In this document: piece after piece, positions 229-15,007 of the stretch
Layout: each line of letters starts with the position of its first letter
How positions within the stretch are numbered: position 1 is the first letter of the stretch
Assembly: GCA_000388065.2 (NCBI GenBank)
Contig: KB932214.1
Length of the DNA: 15,013 bases
From: Fonticula alba ATCC 38817
Taxonomy: Eukaryota > Protista > Nucleariida
Reading direction: 5' to 3' (one strand)
Position numbers and translations under genes: made by a program
The notes under the pieces: generated by a model
Database searches by the model: none
The model's input: the letters and a program-made list of their open reading frames with translations, nothing else
What the model was told of the DNA's origin: nothing

Positions 229-3200
229 ATGTTCCACATCGTGCGCGCGGTCTTCGGGTACGACCCGCTGGAGTCCGGCGATCTGCTGGACCCGGCCGAG
301 TCGACCGAGTTCCTCACCTTGCAGCTGAATGACCACATTGTCCTGCTCCGGGCCACCGATGAGGCCGGGCTCACGGAGCCGGACATCGACCTGGCCTCGT
401 CGGACTGGTGGCTTGGGGCGAATTACGATCATCCGGAGCGCTTTGGCTGGTTCCCGAAGGCCTTCGTGGAGACGGTCAGCCGGGACACGGCCGAGGTCAT
501 GTCCTTCACCTTCACCGGGGACCAGTCGCTGGCCCGGGAATGGCCCACCTGCGGGGCCTTCATCCAGCCCTCGGACCGGGACTCCATCGAGCTGATGCTG
601 ATGCGCACGACCTCCAACGAGGATCTCGACCCGGGCGCCGACCGGCTCGAGGGGGGGACCCTCCTGACGGACGACAGTAGCCCGGACCTCCTGCCGGAGC
701 TGCTGCTCCTGCCGGGGCTGGAGAGCGACGACGACGCCACCACCGACGATGGCGGCGAGGAGGCTGAGCCGGAGCCGGAGCCGGAGCCGCAACACACGCC
801 CGGCGGCCCGGTCCCGCGGCCGATCACCACCGCGGCCGGGCCCGAGTCCGCCTCCGTTGCCATCCCCCCAGGCCGACGGCCAGCGTGGTACTGACGGGCT
901 CGTCGTCGCACCTGGCCGGCGGGGGGCTCTTTGGGCCGCTGGCTGGGCCGCCGGCGGCGGCGCCGGCCGTGGCCCTGGCGGCCAGCCCGATGGACCTGAC
1001 GCGCCTGGACCAGGGCTTCTACCGGATGGCGCATGCGCTGATGGCGCACGCGCCGCAGGCCAGCTCGGGCATGCATCGGATGCTGCCCTTCAGCCGGGAC
1101 GAAGTGATCCGGGTGATGGACGCGCCGGCGGATCTGCCCGGTGGTGCGCCGGCTGGCTATCTTTTCGGTCAGAACACCGCCGGCCAGTCGGGCTTCTTCC
1201 CGCCGCATCTAGTGCAGTTCTTCCAAACGTCCGACTACCTGGCCGATCAGATTGGTGCGTGTGTGTGTATTTGTGTATGTATGTGTGTGTGTGCATGGCT
1301 GTGTATACATACGTCTACATGTAGTTGCATGTAGTTGCATGTAGTTGCATGTAGTTGCACATGTATCTGAGTGCAGTTGTGGGCACATGCAAATGCATGC
1401 ACAGACTCCCTCCTCCCTCCTCCTCCCCCCCCCCCCCCTCCCCTCCCGCCTATGTCCCCGGCGCTTGCTGACCTGCTGTCCCTGCCGTCGCCTCCTGGCG
1501 GGCGGGCGGACGAATGGCCCCGGGATCCAGCCCTGGCCCAGCTAGATCGGTTCATCGATCTGAAGCGGCCGCGGCCCGTGCGCATCGGCGACGAGGTGCT
1601 GCCGGCGCCGCCGCCCGGATGGCGATACTCCCGGAACCCGGCCGGCCGGCCGTACCTTTACTGCACGGAGACCGGGGCCCGGGCCTGGTCGGTCTTTGAG
1701 ATTGCCCGCGGGCAGGGGCTCCTGGATGCCGGGGGCCCGGCCCTGTCGCCGAGCACCCCCGGCGGGCATGGTGGCAGCCTGCGCGTGGCGGTGGGGCAGG
1801 AGCCCCGGACGCCGGGATCGGCGTACGCCTCGTCATCCTTGACGACCGGGTCGGACCAGCGCAAGAATGTGGCCTTCTTGCGGAGCCTCCGCCGGCGGGA
1901 CCACCAGTCGCACGATCGGTATGTGCCGCTCGGGTCGCCGGAGCTGTCCATCTCCTTCGGCGAGGGGGGCCTCTTTGGCGGGGAGCGCGGCCTGGCGGAC
2001 AATGACCCGACCCTGCGGACGATGGTCCGGGCCCCGCTGGAAGGGGCGACCGCCGTGGCGCTGGCCAATGGCTCGGCCACCGGCCCCGGGCAGCCGGGCA
2101 TGCGGATGGGGGGCTCGCCTTCGCGGGCGGCCATCGGCCTGACGCAAGTGGCCCTGGCCGGTGGGGCCGGCATCGGGGCTGGCGATGCGGCGGCTGACGG
2201 CCAGTCCAGCGGCTCGCGCCAGCTCATCGCCCTGACCAAGCTGTCGATGTATCTTCCCTCGTCGCCGCTGGAGGGGGCCCCGGGTGCGGGGGATCTGACG
2301 GCCACGGCGTCGCCGGGGCCGGCCTCGGCTCTGCCCCCGCCGCTGACTGGCATGAGCCACCCGCCGGCAGGTGCGCAGCCGCACCCGCACCCGCACCCGG
2401 AGAGCCATCCGCACCAGCCCTCGGATGGCATGCGGCAGCAGCAGCAGCAGCAGCAGCAGTCGCGCTCGCCGCCACCGCCGTCAATGCCCCTGCCGCACCC
2501 GGTGCCGCATCCTCCACCGGCGTCGGCGCAAGGCCACGGCATGGCCCCTTCCCACGCGGCACAGCTCCACCACCACCACCTCCACCACCTCCACCACCTC
2601 CATCACCACCACCACCACCACCAGCAGCAGCAGCAGCAGCAGCACATGTACTCCACGTACCCGGCCCCGCAGCATCACCCGGGCATGGCGGACCCCGTGC
2701 AGCCCTCGCTGCCGGTGAGGCCCGACACACTGCCGGGCATGGTGCCTGGCACCTCGGCGCGGTCGCTGCCCCCTCCGATCATGGTGCCGATGGTGCCGGC
2801 CGGGGCGGCTGGCGGCTTTTCCGCCCCGACGTCCATCTCCTCGCTGCCGCCGTTGGAGTCGCCCAGCAGCGTGTACATGACGCCGCTGATCATCCGGTCG
2901 CCGCCGGGCAGCGGGACGGCCCTGGAGCGGGCCGCCTCCAACCCCTCCCTGCTGGGTGGGGCCCTGGGCCATGGCCCGGCGGGCGGCATGGGCATGATGG
3001 TGGACCCGGCCCGTGGGCCGAGGGCGGTCGGCTTGCCGCCGCCGCTTGTGGCCGACGTCGCCGCCGGGGTTGTTGGTGGCCGTGGGCCCGGCAGCGTCGG
3101 GTCGGTCGGGGACTTGGATGGCTCGGACTTGGACATGTCGCTGCCGCCGCCGCTGGTGCTGGCGGAGGACGCCACGGAGGAGCCGCTGTTGCCGCTGGCG

Positions 3201-3918
3201 CCGCCGCCGAAGCCCGAGCGCCCGAGTGCTCCCGGCACCCCGGGGCCCCGGGGCACCGTGCACATCATGGCCGGGGCCGCGTCGCTGCCGCTGCCGCTGC
3301 CGCTGGCGCCGGCGCTGGCGCCGCCGGCGCTACTGGAGCCGGCCGGTGCACCGGCGGCCCCGGTGGCCGGGCCTCCTCCCCCGGAGTGCGACCTGGCCGA
3401 GACGGCTTCCTGCTCCTCGAGCCCCTCCTCGAGCCCGCTGCCGCCGCCGCTGCTGGAGGTGTCCCCCCTGCCCGGTGTCGGGGAGGAGGGCGACCCGGAG
3501 CAGGGCGGCCGGGCTGCCCTGTCGCATCGCCACTCGGCCCCGCCGTCCCCCTCGCCGGGGGGAGTCTCGGGGGGGCCGGACTCCGGGGTGCTGGTCGACG
3601 TCGGCTCCACTGTCTCGGCACGGGCCGACCCGGCGGGCGGGGCTGCGGCTGGGAGTGCGGCGGTGCCGCCGCCGACGGCCGACGAGGCCCCGGCGGTCGA
3701 GCCGCTGGCCCCGGCGGCCGCCAGTCGGCCGGACGTCGAGAACAACGAGCACTATGTACGTACGGTGCACGGCGAAAGCCGGTGCCATGTGTGTGTGGGG
3801 CTGGCGATGCATGCGCATGCCGCATGCCGCATGCCGCATGCCGCATCTCGCATCTGCTCTCCCCGCTTCGCCCTTTTGCCCCGGTGCTCTGGTCCTACGC
3901 GCTCTGCTCCTGCTCACC

Positions 3919-3979
<61 letters not shown>

Positions 3980-4509
3980 CCCGCTTGTCCCAGCAGGCAC
4001 GGCAGATCACAGTCGCCCTCCGGCGCTTGGACGGGGCCGTTCGGGCCAACCGCGGCTCCGACAGCGACCCGGCGGCCGGCGACGAGCGGCCGGTTCGCCT
4101 GTCACCCCGGTCGCATGCGGAGCTGCGCCTGGTGCTGGATGCCGGCCGAGCGCTGGTGTCCGAGTCGGCGGCGCGCATCCTCGTGCAGGCGACCTCCCTG
4201 TCGGCGGTGGTGGCCAAGCAGGCGGCGCGGGCGGCGGCGGCCGGGGCCGAGGTCCCCGACGCGCGGGCCCTCTTCCGCGCGGCGGTCAGCAGCCTGGAGC
4301 GGTCGATGGCCGAGCTGGACCGCCTGCTGGCGCCTCTGTGTCAGGCGGAGGAGGAGATCTTCGGCGAGGAGCCGGAGTCGCTGGCCTCCGGCACGGCGGC
4401 CGACCAGCCGGCCATCACTCGCAACCAGGCGGCCACGGCCATCGCCACGGTGGTGTCGGCCACGGCCAGCGTCCAGGGTGCCGCGCATGCGCTGCTCCTG
4501 TCAATTTGA
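229..4509 (+). CDS. SH3-SH3-WW adaptor/scaffold, ~1290-1300 aa. Inferred exons: 229-~845/871, ~872-1254, 1405-3755, 3979-4509. The 5' end may extend to an exon upstream of the window.
   Basis: SH3-1 ~232-474 (VRAVFGY..LTLQLNDHIVLL..DWWLG..RFGWFPKAFVE). SH3-2 ~1020-1223 (AHALMAH..LPFSRDEVIRV..GYLFG..GQSGFFPPHLVQ). WW 1608-1688 (PPPGWRYSRNPAGRPYLYCTETGARAW). The GT-AG introns 1255-1404 (phase 1/1) and 3756-3978 (phase 0/0) join ORFs 885, 1371 and 3013 in frame; TGA at 4507-4509. One frame break near 846-871 is unresolved. A pyrimidine tract plus CAG at 220/227 suggests an intron may precede ATG 229. Confidence 0.8.
1255..1404 (+). other. Spliceosomal intron (150 nt) in the scaffold gene
   Basis: Donor G|GTGCGT followed by a TG-rich tract; acceptor GCACAG|AC. 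Phases match (ATT G|AC TCC = I-D-S). Removing it deletes the in-frame TAG at 1332-1334. Confidence 0.85.
1318..1357. repeat. Tandem repeat (CATGTAGTTG)x4, intronic
   Basis: Four perfect 10-bp units read directly. Confidence 0.97.
2436..2645 (+). repeat. Coding trinucleotide repeats: Q8 (2436-2459) and HHHHLHHLHHLHHHHHHH-Q7-H (2568-2645)
   Basis: (CAG)n and (CAC)n runs in the frame of the long exon. Confidence 0.93.
3815..3856. repeat. Tandem repeat (GCATGCC)x4 plus two degenerate units, intronic
   Basis: Four perfect 7-bp units at 3815-3842, then GCATCTC and GCATCTG. Confidence 0.95.
3924..3977. repeat. (CA)27 microsatellite abutting a 3' splice site
   Basis: Read directly. Confidence 0.98.
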
Positions 4510-5630
4510 TGGGCACGGCAGGTCTTCCTCTGGGACGGAGCGGCGCGGGGCGGGCCCTCTGGTCCCCTCTTCCCCTCCTTGCTCCCTGTGGTCCATTTGC
4601 TTGCACGCCCCCCCCCCCCCCCCTCCCTTCTGGCCCCCGGTCTCTCCATCCTGCGGGTGGGGGCCCGTCCCTCTTGTGCCGGGGGCTGGCGGGCCGAAAA
4701 TACACCCTCCCCCTGTCCTTGAAGACTAACAGGAAGCGCCACGACTTTTATCCCTTCCCCGCTGTGTGTCCTCCCTTCGCCCTGCTTTTGAATAGCACGG
4801 CGGCGGGGGGGGGGGGCCGCGTCGGAGGCGATGCCGGGGGCGCCGCTTATGCCGTATAGGCTGCCATGTGATCCGCGACCCGGCGTTGGCTGTTGTTCGG
4901 GAAAATCGGGCCTTTCTTATTGGGCCTATTATTCCGGGCGGCCGGAAGGAAAGGCCCGGGGGCGGTCTTTTCCCCGGCCCTCTCGGTGCGTGCGTGCGTG
5001 CGTGTGTGCGTGCGCGTGGGCGGCAAGCGATCCGCCGCCCCGCGAGCCGGGCAAGCGGGAGGAGGACATGCAGTATGGGTGCGGGGGTATATGGTCCCGG
5101 CGTGGGCAGCGGCGGGGGGGGGGGGGGCCTTCTTTCAGGAAACTTCCTCTTCCGGTCGCCGCCAGCCAGGGCCCCCCTCTCCCGGGGGTACGGGCGGGCC
5201 GGGCCACCGGCCGGGTGCGCCGGCCGCCGGCATGTGTGAGGGGAACACCGGGTAGGTTGTGTTTTCGAAGCTGGTGCCGGGGCGGGGGCCGCGCCTCCCG
5301 CGCCCCCCGCCCGCCCCCCCCCCTCCCCCCGTTCGACCTGGGGACAGGCGGCGTTTCGCTGGTTTTCCACCCCCCGGGGCTGCGTCCGGCGCCGGCGCCG
5401 GTGCCGCCGCCCGGCGGGCCTGGGACGAGGGGGGGGGGGGCGGGAGTTCCCTCTCGGGCGGGGGAAAGGAGAAGATGTGGTGGGCTGGCCTGCCGGGGGA
5501 GGGCCGGGGCGCGGGAGCCGGGCCGGTGCATGGGCCTCGGCGTGCGGGCCGGACGCTGCCTGTGCGCACGCGTCCGCGCCCGCACGGCCAAAGCCCCCGC
5601 GGCCATCCGTGGGGGCCTGGCACCGGTCCG

Positions 5631-6475: not shown

Positions 6476-6803
6476 CCCCCCGGGTCACTGCCGCCGCCGA
6501 CGCCGCCGCCGCGCCCCGCTTGCTCTTCCTGCCCAAGGCGGGCGTGCTATTTTTTCGGCCACCACCACCCGGTCCGCCGTGCGCGTCGCTGTGGACCGAC
6601 ATTGCCCCCCCTCCCCCACTCATATTTCCCCCTTCCCCGCCTCCTCCCCCGCCCCCTCCCTTCCGCCACCTTGCCCGGGACCCTGTGGCAGCCCCCCCCC
6701 CCTCCCGCTCCTCCTCCTCCTCCCTCCCTGCCCCCTGTCTCCCTCCCCGCCCCCCTCCTCCCTTCCCTCGCCACCCCGCCGGCCCACTCCCGGCGACGTG
6801 AGC

Positions 6804-8134
6804 ATGGGCGCCCCTCCTGCGCCCCTCTCCCTGGGCGCCGGTGCCGGCGCCAGCGGGCATCGAGCGATATCCTCGTCGGGCGCCGGCCGAGGTGCGCGCC
6901 CCTCCCCCGCCCTTCCCTCCGTTGCCTTCCCTCCGTTGCCTTCCCTCCGNNNNNNNNNNNNNNNNNNNNNNNNNNNNNNNNNNNNNNNNNNNNNNNNNNN
7001 NNNNNNNNNNNNNNNNNNNNNNNNNNNNNNNNNNNNNNNNNNNNNNNNNNNNNNNNNNNNNNNNNNNNNNNNNNNNNNNNNNNNNNNNNNNNNNNNNNNN
7101 NNNNNNNNNNNNNNNNNNNNNNNNNNNNNNNNNNNNNNNNNNNNNNNNNNNNNNNNNNNNNNNNNNNNNNNNNNNNNNNNNNNNNNNNNNNNNNNNNNNN
7201 NNNNNNNNNNNNNNNNNNNNNNNNNNNNNNNNNNNNNNNNNNNNNNNNNNNNNNNCCCTCACCCATCACCCCTCCCCCCTCCCTGCGCAGCCTCGCTCGG
7301 CGCGGCCGGCGCAGCCCTCCTCTCCCTCTTGCTGGTCTTGGCGGCCAGCCCCATGGTCGCGGCCACCGCGGCGGCCGACGGCAACGCCAGCAGCGCCAGC
7401 AGCGATGTCCCGGCCGATGACACACCGGTGGCCCGGGCGCTGACCATCCTCCTGACGGTCCTCTACTCGGCGGTCCTGTGCGTGGTGGTGGTGCAGCTGG
7501 CGCGGCTGGTGTGGAACCGCCACAAGCTGGCCTCCTTCCAGTCGGTGTTCCTGATGCTCTGCCTGGCATGGAGCGCCCTGCGCACGGCGCTGGCCCTGCT
7601 GCTGGTGGTGCTGCGGTCGGCCACGGCCCTGCCACGGGGGGTGTTCGTCCCGCTGGCCTGGCTGCCATTGAACTTCCTCTGGGCCACCTACACGCTGCTG
7701 GTGCTCTTTTATGCGAATGTCATCCACCGAAGCGTGTCCCGGTGGGAATCCCACACCCGGCGCCGGTACTTCGTCGTGTGGGCCGTGGCCAACCTGCTGC
7801 TGCTGGCGACCACCCTGACCTTCGTGCTGCTGGTGTCGGTGCGCAATGTGCCGCTCACCTCGCCGGTGGCCCGGGTCATCCGGTTTGCCTATCCGGCGGT
7901 GCTGTTCGGGTCGCTGGTGTGCCTGGTGGCGTGGTATGGCCTGCGGCTGTACAATGCCTTCCGCAATCCGATGGCCTTGATCCCCTTCCACGCGAGCGGG
8001 TCCTCCGTGCTGGGGATCGCCCTGGTGACGGGGCTGCTGGCCGCGGTGTTTGCCTGTCGGGCCATCTACTCGGCCACCATGGCGGTGGTGGTGTGGCTGG
8101 AGCCGGTGCCGCTGGCCTCGATGGCCGCCTCGCT

Positions 8135-8180
<46 letters not shown>

Positions 8181-9039
8181 TGGCTGGCCGACGCAGCACT
8201 GCTCCTGGGCCAGGTCCTTGCCGGGGGCGACAGCAGCGGCGGGTCGGTGATCGCCGGCGGGCCCGGCGACGGGGGCAACCATGTGCTGGCCTTCGAGCAT
8301 CCGGTGCTGCGGTTCATCTCGCTGGTCCTGTCGGAGATTGTGCCGTCGGTGTCGATTTTGGCCTTCTTCCGGCACATCCCCGGCCGGCCGAGCGCGCAGG
8401 TCACCTCGCGCAGCAGCCTGCCGCCGGCCTTCCAGCGGTCGACCGGCGGCGGCGGCGGCGGCGGCGGGTCCGGCGGCGGCGGCGGCGAGTACGCGCCATT
8501 GCCCTCGTCCGGGGGGGACTCCGGCGACGGGTCTGGCGCCTCGGCGGGTGGCAGCGGCGCCACCAGCGGCGGGCTCCTGGCCAGCATGATGCTCACCGGC
8601 GGCGGGGCCTCGGTGATGGATGTCAATGCCATGCAGTCGGCGGCCGGCATCGGTGGCGGGTTCTCCATCAACAGCTCCAGTGCCGACATGATGGAGGGCT
8701 CCGGGTCTGGCATTGGGGGGTTCCTGCACCAGCAGCAGGCCCAGGCCCAGTACCCGCATCATGGGGGTCACTATCATCCCCATCACCATGTCGGGCACTA
8801 CTACCAGTATGGGGAGTATGGAGGCTCGCATGAGGCCATCATCGGGGCCGGGCCGCCGTTCGGCCAGTCGGTCGACGACTTTGTCGGGGCGGCGGCCGGG
8901 GCGGCCGGGGTGGTCGGGGCGTCGGACGACGCCCCCGGCGAGCGGGAGGCCCTCCTGGCGGCGGCGCACCTGCAGCATGGCGCGACCGGCGGCAGCGGGT
9001 ACTACGTCAGCCCGTATGGCCGGGACTCCTCCTCGGCCG

Positions 9040-9070
<31 letters not shown>

Positions 9071-9248
9071 CTACCATCACCAGTCGTTGATGTACCAGCA
9101 GCAATTGGCCGCGGCCGGCATTGCCCCGATGCCGGGCGCCTCTTCACACTTGAGCCACGCGCAGATGTACCAGAGTTCGTATGCCGCTGGTGGCGGCTCG
9201 ACCGGCCCCGGGGCCGGCTCGCCCTCGTCCTTCCCCTCGGCGAACTAG
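6804..9248 (+). CDS. GPR137: GPR137/TM7SF1-family seven-transmembrane protein, ~681 aa (exons 6804-6891 and 7291-9248; alternative start ATG 7353)
   Basis: Seven hydrophobic segments at ~7437-8368. LTILLTVLYSAVLCVVVVQLARLVWNRHKLASFQSVFLMLCLAWSALRT closely follows the GPR137B TM1-TM2 as I recall it (VQL..RHK..SxQSVFLxLCLxWxxLRT). GSSV..RAxY at TM6 and ExxP..FFR at TM7 also match. The intron 6892-7290 joins phase 1/1. TAG at 9246-9248. Exon 1 is less certain because the intron spans the gap. Confidence 0.88.
6911..6949. repeat. Minisatellite (CCTTCCCTCCGTTG)x2.8 running into the N gap
   Basis: Units at 6911-6924 and 6925-6938, and a partial unit at 6939-6949. Confidence 0.9.
6950..7255. other. 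Assembly gap (306 N)
   Basis: N run. Confidence 1.
8136..8180 (+). repeat. (GGC)15 encoding Gly15 in the TM6-TM7 loop
   Basis: Read directly, in frame. Confidence 0.97.
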
Positions 9249-9355: not shown

Positions 9356-11340
9356 TGGACACTGAGCGGAGCAGGGGGGCGTGTGGAGATGTTGTTGGCG
9401 GGCATGCGCGCAGACTTTCCCTGCACCCTCCACCCCCCTGGCGCTGGCTGCGTGACATTCGCATGTGTCCGGCGGTCTGCTCTCCCTCCTCTCTTCTCCC
9501 TCCCCCTCCCCCCCTCTCTCTCTTCCTATTTAATTTCGCGCCTGTGCGCGTGCGCGCACACCCTGTCCTTGATATCGATGCCTTGGGCGTCCCCCTTCCT
9601 CCTCTCTCCGCCTGCGCATGCGTGTCTGTGTGCCTGGCATGTGTGCATGCGCGGCCTCAGTGGTGGTGGTGCTGGTGGTGGCGAGAGGGGGGACCCACAG
9701 GAGACGCCTTCCCCCCCTTCCCTTGCAGTGATTGCCTGTCCCCGGCCGCCGGTCCCCCTCCCCTCCCTTCTCTGCCGAGGGGCGCGAAGGGGGGGGGGAG
9801 GGCGAGGCCAGGGGACGGGAGCGGGCACCTCTCTTCCTCCCCCATCTGTGTCCGTTCACCACCCGCCCAATACATGATTTTCCTTTGAGAACAGGAGAGG
9901 GCCGCAGTCGGTGTCCCTTCCCCGGGCGGGGCCGGGGCCGGGGCGAGGGGCCGGGCAGGCCAGCATGGGCAGTCTTCAGGGGCAGAATGGGGAGTGCCCC
10001 GGGAAGTTAATCGATCTCAAACTGGCGCGAGGAAACGCTATTCCTCCGGGGACTGGGTTGGCAGTCCAAATGTCCCTCTTTCCAGCGGGAAAGTCATGCT
10101 ACGGCGCCGAAAATGTCGGCGGCCCCCGGTCGCCCGGGCGCGCTCGGGGGCGCGTGTGTCTGCGTGTGCATCGGGCGAGCCCTGCACGCCGGCCACGCAT
10201 GTGTGGTGTGCGTGTGTGTCGTGCGCGTGTGTCCCCTTTCTGCGTCTGTCGCGGGGGGTGGCGGGGCCGATTGTTTTAGTGGGCCGAGAGGGGCGTGTGC
10301 CATCTCCCTCGTTGTTTCTGTGTGCGGGCGCGCGTCGGGGGCCCCTCCCACCGGGGGGGGGGGGGCAGAACGCGATGATGCACGGTCCGGCGGCGAGGGG
10401 CCGCCACCGAAGGTAAGACGCACGGCACGGCCCTGCCCCGGGCATTTCCGAGGGGAGAAATGTCTGCTCGGCTGTGGGCTGGCGTGGGAGCTCCGTCACC
10501 ATGCTGGAGGCGCCTCTCGCGTGTGGGGGTGCGGCGAGGCGCGGGGGGGGGGGGGGGGATGTACACGCGCGGGTGTACACGGACGCGGCTGTTTTCGGCT
10601 CGGCGTGCCGGGCGAGCACCCGCCTCTTTCGAGGGAGATCTATCCCGGGATCTGTCCATGCGCTGCCCGGGCTGCAGGGGGGGGGGGCCGGGTTGTGCCC
10701 TCTGTGGACTAATGGGCGAGCTCGCCCCGGGGGTGGTATTATTGTTGTCTTCCTCCATTTGTTGTGGGTCTGGACTCGAGCGGCCCTCCGGGCCGAGGTG
10801 CCTCCATGGGGCGTTCGGGGGGGAGGGGGGGCATCCCCAAGTGCCTGGCGCATTCCCTCTGTCGGTGTGTCTGTGTCTTGTCGGTGTGTCTGTCCCTCTC
10901 CTTCTTTCTCTCGCTCCCTCTCGCTGTCTTTCTCTCACACATTCGCGCTCGCATTCGCACTGGCTCACGCGGCTGCCGCGCCGCTTGTTGGAGGGCACCC
11001 CTTTTGCTGGGGTCCCCTCCTGCCGAGACTGCCACCGCCTCGATCCCAAGGGAGCTGGCGGTGTCCCGAGACACGGCTCGCTCACTTCGGCGACCGGCGG
11101 AGGAGGGAAATATTCCGAGCCCAGCCGCTCGGCGTGCCGGGCGAATGTGCGCTCTCCTGGCCTGGCCGGCCGGAGCAGGTAGCATGCATCCCCCGGGGCA
11201 TCGGCCGGCACCTTCGCCCCGGGTGCGACAGTCGCCGCAGCCGGCGTGCCCGGACGACGGCCCCACCCCCCTGCCGGAGGCGTTCGGCCGCGTCATAAGG
11301 TGGTCCGGTGCCGGCTGGGCAGATGGGCCGCGGCCAATCT

Positions 11341-11370
11341 CTCCTCCCTCCCTCCCCTCCCTCCCCTCCC

Positions 11371-11414
<44 letters not shown>

Positions 11415-11432
11415 GCGCGCGCGCGCGCGCGC
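11341..11432. repeat. Compound microsatellite: C/T tract and (CT)n, then CTATCT, then (CG)9
   Basis: Read directly. Confidence 0.95.
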
Positions 11433-12342
11433 CAGTCTTGCTGCTTCGCCTCCTTGCCGCGCTGTGACTTTCCTTTTCTCGTTCTGCCGCTCTCTTGCAC
11501 ACCTGCCTTCCTCCGCCACCAGGCCCCGGGTGCCGTGTGCTGCTCGGTGTGCGTATCCTGGTGTGTGTGTGTGTCCGCGCGCGGCACGCACAAGTAGCAC
11601 TGTGATCTCGATTGCCCCGGCCCGGCGCCGCGCCACCATGGCACGCGGCCCCCCTCGCGCGCTGCCTACACGCAGGTACGGCTTGTCCAGGGATCCCTCT
11701 GCCGCTCTTTCGCCCTGGCCCTGTGGCGTCGCCGCCGCAGCCGCCGTCGCCGCTTCCTCTTTGGCCGCAGCGTCCCCGGGCCACCTTTCCAGCAAGTGCA
11801 TGTCCCCCCCCCCTCCCGCGCCCTTCTCCTCCGCTGCCCTGCCCTCTGTCGGGCCTGCCGCGGCGCGCCCGCCCGAGATGTGCCCCCCCCCCCCCCGTTG
11901 GGTCTTCACCGACCCGCGCCGGGCGTAGTCGCCGCGGCCGCTGCGCGTTCCCCATGGCTGGCGCGAGGCGTGAGGGTGGGGGGAAAAGCGAACAAGCAAG
12001 AAGCAGCACCACCCCGGCGGGGTGGTGGTCGAAAGAGCACAAGGGCCGAAAAAAGGGGCTTTGTTTTTTCTTTCGGAAGTACACGTCTCCTCCCGTGCGA
12101 GCGCGCCGCATGGCAAAGCGCCGCAGGGGCAGGGGGGGGGAAGGGAAAAAGGGGGTAAAAAACTAGGGGAGCGCGTGGGGCTGCGCGGCGCCCCCGCTCG
12201 GGGAGAGTGATGAACTGGTTTCCCCCCGCGGCGGAAGTCGCACGCTCTCTCTCTCTCTCTTTCGCTCTCGGACATCCGCTCGCTCGCATGCAGACAAAGG
12301 CATGCCTTCTTGGCATGAGGGTCCTGCCTCCGGCGGCGACCG

Positions 12343-12350
<8 letters not shown>

Positions 12351-12395
<45 letters not shown>

Positions 12396-12402
12396 CTCTC
12401 TC
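12351..12402. repeat. Compound microsatellite (TC)15-(GC)8-(TC)3 immediately after the stop codon of the dioxygenase gene
   Basis: Read directly. Confidence 0.95.
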
Positions 12403-13239
12403 TTACTCCGGGGCCAGGATGACCTTCGGCAGCTTGGGCCAGTTCCACACGCGGAAGATGTCGTGCTCGGTGGGGACGATGGCGCCGTTGGGCCGGAGCG
12501 GCAGGTTGACATGGCCGAGCTCCTCCATGATCTGGGTGAGGGTGACGCCGGTGGGGTTGGAGGCGGTGCCCATGAGGCGGTCGTACCCGACGGCGGTGTA
12601 CACGGCCGGGGTGAGCCAGGTGTTGGAGTAGAACCGGTCGAGGGAGGCGCGGCCGGCCACGAAGGGCAGGAAGCCGGTGGAGCTGAGCAGCGACACGCCG
12701 TCCGAGTCGGCGGAGTCCATGCCCAGCATGCCGATGGCCAGGTCCACCTGCTCGATCTGCCAGTCGTAGAGCTCGGCCATGCGGGCGGCGGTGACCGGGT
12801 CCTGGGCCATGTAGGCGAAGGTGGGGGCGGCCAGCTCCGGCAGGCCGCACCGGCGGTAGTACTCATTGGCGCGGGGGACGGCGCGCTCGCGATCGCGGAC
12901 GATGTCCACCACGCCGAGGTCGATGAAGGGGGCCACATAGCAGGTGCCCTGCTGGGCGTACTGGTAGGCGGGCCCGGCCGGGCCGAGGGGGTGGTAGGGG
13001 GTGCGCTGCTGGAAGACCACGTCCGAGTGGGTGAGTCGGCGGATGCCGGCCGGGTGGTTGTTGAGGGACATGTGCCCGGCGACCTCGGTGGCCAGGCCGC
13101 GGAGGATGGCCCCGACGCCGCGGTCGCGGAGGATCTGCGAGTTGTGGTAGGTGTGGAAGTAGTCGATGCGCTCGCCGACCTTGAACCCGGCGATGTCCAG
13201 GGGCTGGAAGGAGGCGGGCATCATGGAGTGGAGCCGGTA

Positions 13240-13273
<34 letters not shown>

Positions 13274-14955
13274 GTTAGGAGCCTGGCGGTGGGGTGACCT
13301 GGTGTGCCAGCGGCGTCGGCGGCATTGTCCGTGTGTGTGTGTGTGTGGGGGGGGGGGGCCTCGCTCCCTCGCTCCGCCTCTCTACCTCGGTGTTGCGGGA
13401 GATGACTGACACGCGTGGCTCTCTGACTGTCCCCCCCCCCCGCCCCCCCACGCACCCCCGCAACAGCAACAGCAACACCCCTCGGCAGGACGTACGCGCT
13501 GGTGAAGTCGAAGGGCGTCAGGTGGACGCCGAAGTTCTCGTTGTAGTTGCGCGAGCCGTGGCTGGACCAGATCTGCTCGGCCAGCATCTTCTTGGCCGGG
13601 TCGGTGCTCAGCTGGGAGGACAGCTCGACGGTCTGGATCTTGAACACCTCGGCGGCCAGGATCAGGCGCGCGGTCTGGAAGAGCTCCTCATCGCTCATGG
13701 CCGGGTAGGCCTGGGCCAGGAGCTTGGCCAGGTTGTTGTGCTCCGACACGAAGAGCGCATGGAAGGCCGTCAGGCCGATGTGCTGGTTGCCGCGCGAGTC
13801 GCCGAGCAGCAGCAGCGGCGGGGCCCCCGGGGCCAGGCGCCGGGCGCCGGACTGGCTGGTCGGCTCGTCCGGCGGCAGGCCGGTGGCCGCGTCCACGCGC
13901 AGGCGGCCGCCCTGGAACTCGCGCAGGGACGCCTGCACGGCCTCGGAGCTGCCATACACCTGGGAGGTGTCCAGCCAGGCGGTGGCATGGTTGGTGACCG
14001 TGCCGTCGGCATTGCGCGCGGTGGCCGGGATGTACATGTATGCCTCGGCCCCGGCCCCGGCCCCGGCCCCGGCCCCGGCCCAGGCCTGGCTCGGGAAGTC
14101 CGGGTCATTGTGCGGGATGGGCACGGCAATGACCTCGGACCAGTCGACGCGCGGCTCGAAGAAGTCGTGGATGAAGAAGGTCAGGAAGGCGATGGCCAGG
14201 CCATTGAGCTGGACGCTGTTCGGCTGGAAGACCGACCGCCGGAGCAGGGCATTGGACAGGACCCGGGGGTTGGGCCCGGCGGCCACGGCCCGGTCGATGT
14301 CGGCCGGCATGGTGCGCGTCTTGTCGTGGCGGATGAAGTAGAGCCCGGCCATGCCGGAGTACGACCGGTCCGGGGTGGGGTTGTTGCAGGACCCGTCGGC
14401 GGTGCGGAAGCGCGTCCGGTCATACTGGCCGGGGACCACGCACGGGGCGGCCAGGCGCCGGGCCGGGTCCACCGGCGTGTCGCTGATGGCCACGGCCTGC
14501 ACCACGCGGGCCAGGATCTGCTTGAGGCACACCAGGCGCTGGTTGATGTCGGCGATCTTTTGGCACTGGGTCAGGTGCTTTTCCGGGGCCCGGCATTGGC
14601 CGACGGATTGCTGCCCGGCCAGGCAGATGCCCACGTCGCACTGGCTGGCGTGGGTGACGAAGTCGAAGCCGCACACCGGGCCGGAGGTCTTGCTGCAGCG
14701 CGAGGTCCAGGCGCTGGGGAGCAGCGTGCTGGGGCTGGTGGGCCGGCAGCAGCCGAGCGTGCGCAGGGCCTGGCTGTATTGGGCCCGGGCGCTGTGGTCG
14801 CCGGACTGGATGGCCGCCTGGCGCAGGTCGAAGAGGATGGGGCAGCTGAAGCCGGCCGCCAGGCGGGCATTGTGCAGCAGGGCGGCCAGGGCGGCCAGGG
14901 CGGCCAGGCCGAGCAGGTGCCCGAGTGGGCGGCGCCGGGGGAAGCGGCGGGCCAT
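12403..14955 (-). CDS. Secreted animal-heme-peroxidase-superfamily protein, alpha-dioxygenase/fatty-acid-dioxygenase-like, with an N-terminal Kazal-like domain; 765 aa spliced (exons 14955-13496 and 13240-12403)
   Basis: Signal-peptide-like N-terminus (RRFPRRR..LLGLAALAALAALL..ARLAAG) and start context CCCACCATGG. Family motifs: FRTADGSCNN, PNPRVLSN, FFIHD (distal His), WLDTSQVYG, GDSRGNQ, FVSEHN..A..YP..SDEELFQTAR, spliced FTSAYRLHSMMP (catalytic Tyr plus proximal His), DIVRDRERAVPRANEY, DRFY, FRVW. TAA at 12405-12403. Confidence 0.93.
13241..13495 (-). other. Spliceosomal intron (255 nt) splitting the FTSA|YRLH motif
   Basis: Donor GC|GTACGT, branch CTAAC (13278-13274), (CA)15, acceptor CAG|ATAC. 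The phase-2 join gives AGC GCA TAC CGG CTC CAC = S-A-Y-R-L-H. Confidence 0.93.
14047..14081 (-). repeat. (GGGGCC)5 hexamer repeat encoding a Gly-Ala run
   Basis: The plus strand reads (GGCCCC)5 GGCCC; it translates within WAGAGAGAGAGAEAY. Confidence 0.95.
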
Positions 14956-14974
14956 GGTGGGGGTGATGGCTTGG

Positions 14975-14977
<3 letters not shown>

Positions 14978-15007
<30 letters not shown>
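14978..15007. repeat. G30 homopolymer (C30 on the coding strand of gene 3), 22 nt upstream of its ATG
   Basis: Read directly; the exact length may be unreliable in an assembly. Confidence 0.9.

Follow-up and report, generated by a model that had tools for sequence, protein, structure and literature searches.

Animals, plants, and fungi all use dioxygenases of the cyclooxygenase family to make lipid signals, and the N-terminal accessory modules of these enzymes, such as the EGF module of the cyclooxygenases (COX), are poorly understood. The cyclooxygenases proper (PGHS-1 and PGHS-2) are lumenal, secretory-pathway haem dioxygenases of the tyrosyl-radical type, in which an EGF module and helices precede the catalytic domain. 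The alpha-dioxygenases (alpha-DOX) have neither a signal peptide nor a cysteine-rich module, and their N-terminal helices form a membrane-facing base domain. Fungal dioxygenase (DOX) enzymes are cytosolic DOX-P450 fusions, likewise with neither a signal peptide nor a Kazal module; fungal oxylipins regulate sporulation, and Fonticula is usually classified close to the fungi, with a position near the root of their lineage. Here we describe H696_05788 (protein P0001) of Fonticula alba, a gene in which a Kazal-like module precedes a haem dioxygenase. The gene lies on the minus strand of the window, that is, of the whole 15,013-nucleotide (nt) stretch of eukaryotic DNA (G+C content ~70%) that was analysed, from scaffold KB932214.1 of assembly GCA_000388065.2. 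The explanation that, in our opinion, accounts best for the evidence as a whole, and that we hold with moderate confidence, is that the gene encodes a fatty-acid dioxygenase of the secretory pathway capped by a Kazal-fold module with a mainly structural role.

The first line of evidence concerns the identity of the module. Residues 69–121 very probably constitute a genuine but divergent Kazal-type domain, as indicated by cysteine spacing and by sequence and profile matches. The cysteine pattern that the original prediction had read from the DNA, C87-SKTSGPV-C95-GFDFVTHASQ-C106-DVGI-C111-LAGQQSVGQ-C121, is exactly as claimed; the interval 14593..14955, to which it was assigned, encodes residues 1–121 of the open reading frame (ORF) 14955..12403 (-). 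Its spacing (C87-x7-C95-x10-C106-x4-C111-x9-C121) follows the Kazal framework (PF00050/PF07648, PROSITE PS51465), with Cys2-x7-Cys3 containing PVCG, Cys3-x10-Cys4, Cys5, and Cys6 all found in H696_05788. A search of PDB sequences with the 130-residue N-terminal segment alone returned ovomucoid (E=0.0024), PEC-60 (E=0.03), and porcine PSTI (E=0.14). Profiles sharpened the signal considerably: with five segments, the matches were ovomucoid (1.6e-8), follistatin (1.6e-5), the Kazal protein K41043 (2e-5), then SPINK2, LDTI, and others, all 60 of the 60 matches at E<=1 being Kazal-family or Kazal-like; with 12 segments, the best E-value was 1.2e-8, and all 47 of the 47 matches at E<=0.01 were likewise Kazal-family or Kazal-like. 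Thus, the Kazal-like domain suggested by the original prediction is recovered by the single sequence and, at 1.2–1.6e-8, by profiles. Pin1 WW domains also matched residues 77–106, LLPSAWTSRCSKTSGPVCGFDFVTHASQ (~14638..14727, -), at E 0.03–0.07; these matches were judged to be due to chance because they overlap the Kazal Cys2-Cys4 stretch, disregard its cysteines, and are gone in the profile searches.

The second line of evidence comes from relatives of the protein. P0002 and P0004–6 were retrieved by a protein search with H696_05788 as the query, minus its signal peptide and Ala-Gly repeat. An exhaustive HMMER scan with the enzyme domain over 1.84 billion representative proteins gave 4223 relatives at E<=1e-3, with scores of ~540 to 268 bits for a top handful, followed by fragments and then by scores of ~170 bits. 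Among the best 150 of the 4223 matches, together with the proteins from two further searches, the Kazal-like motif is limited to a single clade. The module-plus-enzyme order is present in 12 full-length proteins (P0001, P0002, P0004–6, P0012–16, P0018, and P0019), which share, in this order, a signal peptide, a helix with one cysteine, a CC pair, the Kazal-like segment, a helical linker with two cysteines, and the motif R-x-x-DG-x-CN. As the same ordered module occurs in every full-length member of the top group, the Kazal-dioxygenase architecture is, judging by sequence, ancestral to a small, rare clade of eukaryotes. The ten members other than the two Fonticula paralogues are singletons on environmental, transcript-like contigs of 2.3–3.1 kb (Logan or JGI).

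Within this clade, the CC pair (C69-C70) and Cys5 are invariant, and the pair provides the candidates for Cys1 in H696_05788. The remaining Kazal cysteines are lost in pairs: Cys2 and Cys4 are jointly missing in P0006, P0014, P0015, P0016, and P0018, that is, in five of the 12 members, while Cys3 and Cys6 are jointly missing in P0013. These paired losses match what the Kazal disulfide map (1-5, 2-4, 3-6) predicts. Cys38, unchanged in 12/12 sequences, precedes the pair. The spare cysteines listed in the original prediction (38, 69, and 70) are indeed present, but the conserved C131 and C143 of the linker had been overlooked; with them, the N-terminal module of H696_05788 has ten cysteines, which is enough for five disulfides.

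Several observations weigh against the Kazal assignment or are neutral to it. H696_05788 departs from the classical signature in having His102 for Tyr, Ser104 for Asn, Cys4-x4-Cys5, and a short Cys5-x9-Cys6 stretch. The Cys4-Cys5 gap of four compares with a usual two to three, and is x2 in P0004, P0005, P0012, and P0013; the Cys5-x9-Cys6 stretch is akin to that of short Kazal inhibitors of the “non-classical” kind, LDTI among them. In what we take to be the form of the PROSITE pattern PS00282, the pattern does not match H696_05788 (because of His102 for Tyr and the x4 spacing), and it fits P0004 and P0012. The precomputed Pfam list for P0001 contains PF03098 only, without Kazal, and the Pfam Kazal_1 match on the Fonticula paralogue is just “faint.” AlphaFold2, the fold check named in the original prediction, gave a mean predicted local distance difference test score (pLDDT) of 43.9 for the isolated 160 residues (6-row alignment) and of 58.3, with a predicted TM score (pTM) of 0.65, for the full-length protein (11-row alignment). 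In both runs pLDDT is ~27–31 over residues 70–127, which we attribute to the shallowness of the two alignments. Both models contain helices at ~38–51 and 54–66, at low confidence, and the full-length model has a long helix in the linker at ~137–155 (pLDDT ~70). Finally, the five losses of Cys2 and Cys4 may represent one evolutionary event.

Literature searches found no paper describing an architecture that combines Kazal with peroxidase or dioxygenase. The combination is therefore undescribed in the literature found; it is, however, already annotated automatically by UniProt, and both of its parts come from well-known families. The novelty claimed by the original prediction is accordingly to be narrowed: it stands as regards published descriptions and does not extend to annotation, where the UniRef name of both Fonticula proteins is “Kazal-like domain-containing protein” and the paralogue has its faint Kazal_1 match. 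In that paralogue (P0002, H696_01334, on scaffold KB932202.1), the appearance of two Kazal domains was considered and rejected as a probable artefact of a 203-nt tandem duplication. Inside H696_01334, two stretches (L003 3151..3556 and 4058..4376) are perfect (100%) tandem duplications, of 203 nt and 169 nt. The 203-nt copy puts the sequence out of frame and is bypassed by splicing in the gene model, and the outcome is what looks like a second, partial Kazal segment together with a repeated catalytic segment, probably an artefact of the assembly or of the gene model.

What, then, does the module do? The clade-conserved core consists of the CC pair, G-P-V-C-G-x-D-F, Cys5, Gly114, and the flanking Cys38, Cys131, and Cys143. 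The reactive-site loop is a different matter. In the five members with a canonically placed Cys2, the P1 residue is K (H696_05788), A, R, K, and A; Cys2 is displaced in P0005 (C-x9-C) and P0019 (C-x6-C); and the five members that have lost Cys2 and Cys4 have usually lost the loop-bracing Asn as well. These five nevertheless keep the module, which points to selective constraint on the core. Since the reactive-site loop is unconserved and its disulfide is missing in five members, the clade-wide role of the module is most likely structural. H696_05788 itself retains part of the inhibitor-loop scaffold, which is missing in 5/12 members: Cys2 and the P1 Lys are present, but Ser104 stands in for the bracing Asn (Asn33-equivalent) and His102 for the hallmark Tyr.

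The original prediction had proposed instead a bifunctional extracellular protein of suggested trypsin-type specificity, which couples protease inhibition or binding, or proteolytic activation, to lipid oxygenation. Spelled out, the Kazal domain would be a canonical (Laskowski-type) inhibitor of trypsin-like serine proteases acting through Lys89 as P1; it might protect the enzyme, neutralise the proteases of prey or competitors, or be subject to proteolytic regulation. One premise of this proposal is correct, in that Lys89 lies two residues past Cys2, as does P1 in canonical Kazal inhibitors. The loop C87-S-K89-T-S-G-P-V-C95-G also fits the classical C2-P2-P1...PVCG frame, but the conserved Asn and Tyr that should accompany it are Ser and His in H696_05788. 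Likewise, the four close relatives that have Cys2 carry P1 residues (R, K, A, and A) typical of active inhibitors, most of them keep the bracing Asn, and two proteins, P0004 and P0012, fit the presumed PS00282 signature, whereas five of the 12 members, having no C2-C4 disulfide and hence no canonical loop, still keep the module. The best PDB matches are active inhibitors (ovomucoid, SPINK1/2, and LDTI); many Kazal-like domains, however, are non-inhibitory, for example those of follistatin, agrin, and SPARC, and follistatin is itself among the profile matches. With a variable P1, the C2-C4 disulfide lost in five members, and both hallmark residues replaced, the evidence does not support the coupling of a trypsin-type inhibitor to the dioxygenase, and we regard this proposal as doubtful.

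Two considerations temper the structural interpretation where the Fonticula branch is concerned. First, a hypervariable P1 is normal in active Kazal inhibitors, so that P1 variability alone does not exclude inhibition in this branch. Second, the canonical loop geometry (C2-x-P1, x7 to Cys3) survives there, which makes residual binding of a trypsin-like protease via Lys89 possible as a secondary property. It is unlikely, in our view, that the module of the Fonticula branch is an active serine-protease inhibitor, a protease-docking element, or a protease-triggered switch coupled to an oxylipin-forming Tyr-radical dioxygenase.

The third line of evidence concerns the enzyme part, whose assignment to the haem dioxygenases, specifically to the alpha-dioxygenase/cyclooxygenase branch, is well supported by similarity searches and active-site motifs. 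Its Pfam domain is An_peroxidase (PF03098), of the dioxygenase type. The best PDB sequence match of the spliced protein is Arabidopsis alpha-DOX 4hhr (E=3.8e-30, residues 182–709), followed by the cyanobacterial peroxidase 8s6c (6.6e-30) and rice alpha-DOX (2.9e-28), with COX at ~1e-11; Foldseek, given the full-length model (pTM 0.65), likewise ranks 4hhs/4hhr first (4hhs E=9e-19), then 8s6c and rice alpha-DOX. The residues with assigned roles in alpha-DOX are a distal His, a stacking Phe, a radical-forming Tyr (Y386 in Arabidopsis, Y379 in rice), and a proximal His (PMC8720084). In the alignment to 4hhr, ffiH263dff falls on fmiHdwi, and dF484tsaY488rlH491smmp falls on dFtsvYrmHsllp. Thus, the features of Family 4 of the peroxidase-cyclooxygenase superfamily (the alpha-dioxygenase/cyclooxygenase branch) are all found in H696_05788: the An_peroxidase fold, the distal and proximal His, Y-x-x-H, and the stacking Phe484. 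The motif Y-[RKH]-x-H is present in 12/12 members of the clade, and the peroxidase motif F-R-x-G-H in 0/12.

Within this branch, H696_05788 fully matches neither alpha-DOX proper, which forms 2-hydroperoxides, nor cyclooxygenase. In rice alpha-DOX, the carboxylate is bound by the pair His311/Arg559, with Thr316 (PMC8720084). Arg684 is aligned with rice Arg559, in a column conserved in the clade; rice His311, in turn, is replaced by Gln441, and Trp315/Thr316 by Leu/Ser, for which reason oxygenation at the alpha carbon is not assured. From PGHS the protein differs in having a Kazal-like rather than an EGF module, in its motif Y-R-L-H, and in the weakness of the COX matches (E ~1e-11). As for variation within the clade, the alpha-DOX His/Trp pair (K-I-H-x-x-E-W) is present in P0005, P0006, P0014–16, P0018, and P0019, and is Gln/Leu in the Fonticula branch. 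P0018 has, at residue ~516, the cyclooxygenase form Y-H-W-H and not Y-R/K-x-H. These motif differences hint at varied positioning of the substrate.

The enzyme part might alternatively be a conventional secreted haem peroxidase, such as DdPoxA or the cyanobacterial peroxidases, in which case the Kazal module would sit on a producer of antimicrobial oxidants. We consider this quite improbable. The match to 8s6c nearly equals that to alpha-DOX (6.6e-30 vs 3.8e-30) and ranks third in Foldseek, but the clade as a whole has Tyr-x-x-His with the alpha-DOX/COX spacing, rather than F-R-x-G-H, and conserves the carboxylate-binding Arg684. DdPoxA (6erc), a peroxidase that another aggregating amoeba secretes, is also among the matches, and RTADGSCNN and GD-x-R, both typical of peroxidases, are kept in the clade. 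In the mammalian enzymes, the Asp before the distal His and the Glu at Arg+3 form the ester links to haem (PMC4420034). The corresponding residues of H696_05788 are Ile (before His263) and Gln391 (at Arg+3, equivalent to Glu242), so that no such links would be expected. The protein accordingly lacks the hallmarks of a halogenating (MPO/LPO-like) peroxidase, its motifs being F-I-H263-D, G-D-S-R388-G-N-Q391, and the proximal Y-R-L-H, and the haem dioxygenase named by the original prediction can be specified as one of the Tyr-radical type (Y488-R-L-H491). It should be noted that the GD-x-R motif of the clade is peroxidase-like and tells to some extent against a pure dioxygenase; some peroxidase activity is conceivable.

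The weakest alternative, namely that the cysteine pattern is due to chance or the fusion to the gene model, so that there is no Kazal domain or it belongs to a separate protein, is highly improbable and effectively refuted: AlphaFold2 left the segment unfolded, Pfam reports no Kazal on P0001, Pin1 WW domains match the same 30 residues weakly (E 0.03–0.07), and a word-indexed search with the N-terminal 144 residues alone returned nothing at E<=1, the query itself included (a limit of the index rather than an absence of relatives), but the profile searches return Kazal-family or Kazal-like proteins only (to 1e-8), cysteines are lost in pairs in the relatives, the same architecture recurs on ten independent transcript-like contigs, and one stop-free exon encodes everything from the signal peptide through the cysteine-rich module into a large part of the enzyme domain, which shows that the fusion is not an artefact of the gene model.

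The secretory fatty-acid dioxygenase with a mainly structural Kazal cap, which we prefer, would function as follows. A basic-then-hydrophobic N-terminus is found in 12/12 clade sequences, many of which start with MAR, and the signal peptide noted in the original prediction is accordingly seen, as a signal-peptide-like segment, in H696_05788 and in all of its clade relatives; the protein is presumably secreted, with putative cleavage between ARLAA and GF. The module would be oxidatively folded in the endoplasmic reticulum (ER), with five disulfides, and would consist of a helical hairpin, the Kazal-fold domain, and the helical linker, placed where cyclooxygenases have their EGF module. There it would mainly form a rigid cap, structural or adaptor in nature, that helps the protein to fold, to remain stable, or to oligomerise in protease-rich surroundings outside the cell. 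The catalytic domain would bind haem via His491; a hydroperoxide would oxidise the haem, leading to a Tyr488 radical, which would abstract a hydrogen from a fatty acid bound through its carboxylate to Arg684. Addition of O2 would then yield a fatty-acid hydroperoxide (an oxylipin), both substrate and product being predictions. The same reservation applies to the proposed function at large, for we infer secretion, haem binding, substrate, and product alike.

The features of the gene are collected in Table 1. The spliced product has 765 residues, and uninterrupted reading through the intron gives 850 codons; the ORF product is 100% identical to the NCBI protein. The intron, the only one of the gene, ends at its 3′ side in (CA)15 and interrupts the codon of Ala487, directly ahead of the catalytic Tyr488. 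As it is in frame and stop-free, an unspliced transcript would still be translatable, with 85 additional residues within the Phe484...Tyr488-His491 active-site motif.

Table 1. Features of H696_05788 and of its product; coordinates are positions in the window
Feature	Coordinates	Strand	Residues and remarks
Whole gene H696_05788	12403..14955	-	ORF translation; 100% identity to P0001
Exon 1	14955..13496	-	Residues 1–486 and two bases of the Ala487 codon
Intron	13495..13241	-	255 nt; donor GTACGT, acceptor CACAG; in frame, stop-free
Exon 2	13240..12403	-	Stop codon included
Signal-peptide-like N-terminus	14854..14955	-	Residues 1 to ~34: MARRFPRRRP, Leu/Ala-rich core, ARLAA followed by GF
Helical segment	14752..14853	-	Residues 35–68; Cys38 in F-x-C-P-I-L-F...R
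Kazal-like domain	14593..14751	-	Residues 69–121; cysteine pattern and PDB sequence/profile matches
Kazal numbering			C87 = Cys2 (P3), C95 = Cys3 (GPVC95G), C106 = Cys4, C111 = Cys5, C121 = Cys6
Lys89, P1 position	14689..14691	-	Codon AAG
Linker	14443..14592	-	Residues 122–171; conserved C131, C143
Catalytic domain	12406..14442	-	Residues 172–765, intron-split; animal-haem-peroxidase fold, alpha-dioxygenase/cyclooxygenase type
Catalytic key residues			C172/C190 (RTADGSCNN), Arg388, Gln441, Phe484
Distal His263	14167..14169	-	
Tyr488	13237..13239	-	
Proximal His491	13228..13230	-	
Arg684	12649..12651	-	

Two microsatellites lie within the coding sequence of H696_05788. One, (GCCCCG)x7.5 at 14042..14086 (-), encodes an Ala-Gly repeat loop (residues ~291–303) that is missing from the paralogue; the other, (CAGGGCGGC)x3.4 at 14878..14908 (-), underlies the AAL repeats in the core of the signal peptide. 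Upstream, a run of 35 G nucleotides (poly-C on the strand of the gene) occupies 14973..15007, and the window ends 58 nt from the start codon. The GenBank scaffold passes from this run directly into an N gap (L004 8539..9942); the promoter and 5′ region of H696_05788 are therefore unsequenced.

PDB sequence searches with the neighbouring large ORFs revealed neither a protease gene nor any other functional partner. The ORFs 1371..4859 (+, 1162 codons) and 11082..12938 (-, 618 codons) have no sequence relatives in the PDB and may be spurious in DNA of 70% GC; the latter overlaps the 3′ end of H696_05788 in another frame. An 889-codon ORF at 6579..9248 (+) crosses an assembly gap, a 306-nt run of N at 6950..7255 that also causes an apparent dip in GC at 7001–8000, and its reading frame is consequently untrustworthy. 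The matches of this ORF to single-chain variable fragment (scFv) antibodies were rejected, as they involve the Gly/Ser linker only.

The significance of the architecture lies in its position. A small protist clade has independently put another disulfide-rich module, Kazal, where COX carries EGF, in a presumably secreted member of the same family. If the module is structural, the clade offers a natural experiment on how such caps affect folding, dimerisation, or approach to the membrane; if protease binding has been retained, protease control would be coupled to extracellular oxylipin synthesis. Were the coupled-inhibitor proposal true, this would be the first enzyme to tie the sensing or inhibition of extracellular proteases directly to the synthesis of lipid mediators. 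A secreted oxylipin pathway is also a possibility in Fonticula alba, a slime-mould-like aggregative amoeba, where its signals could influence how the cells aggregate or how they interact with prey bacteria. In practical terms the finding is of modest value, being a domain-architecture variant with a predicted function.

Comparison with known systems places the two parts of H696_05788 in different company. With canonical and “non-classical” Kazal inhibitors (LDTI and rhodniin) and with the oomycete EPI1/EPI10, the module shares Cys2-x7-Cys3-x10-Cys4, PVCG, and the P1 Lys; LDTI has a similarly short Cys5-Cys6 segment, and LDTI, rhodniin, and EPI1/EPI10 are all extracellular. Unlike these inhibitors, it is fused to a 600-residue enzyme, has His for Tyr, Ser for Asn, x4 between Cys4 and Cys5, and DF for DG, and takes Cys1 from a CC pair 16 residues upstream. 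The FS domains of follistatin and the Kazal-like modules of agrin and SPARC are comparable in a different respect, as they use the Kazal core as a structural or binding module within larger secreted proteins, with an unconserved reactive loop; these are metazoan matrix or growth-factor-binding proteins, for which no fusion to a haem enzyme was found in literature searches. Among secreted proteins of the same superfamily, the structural match DdPoxA (6erc) of Dictyostelium discoideum comes from another aggregative, bacterivorous amoeba, but is a true peroxidase with neither Tyr-x-x-His nor a Kazal module.

The dioxygenases are closer. The Y-R/K-W-H forms found in the clade are those of the DOX domains of fungal linoleate diol synthases, Ppo enzymes, and 10R-dioxygenases; in contrast to the fungal DOX-P450 fusions, H696_05788 (765 residues) has no C-terminal P450 domain. 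PGHS differs from it not only in the EGF module and in weaker sequence similarity (~1e-11), but also in its C-terminal ER-retention-like tail, in place of which H696_05788 ends in ...VILAPE. The closest known systems in both sequence and fold are the plant and bacterial alpha-DOX (Arabidopsis alpha-DOX1, 4hhr/4hhs; rice, 4kvj), with which H696_05788, although just ~20% identical in sequence, shares the distal His, Phe-x3-Tyr-Arg-x-His, and the carboxylate-binding Arg (R559 in rice, Arg684 here).

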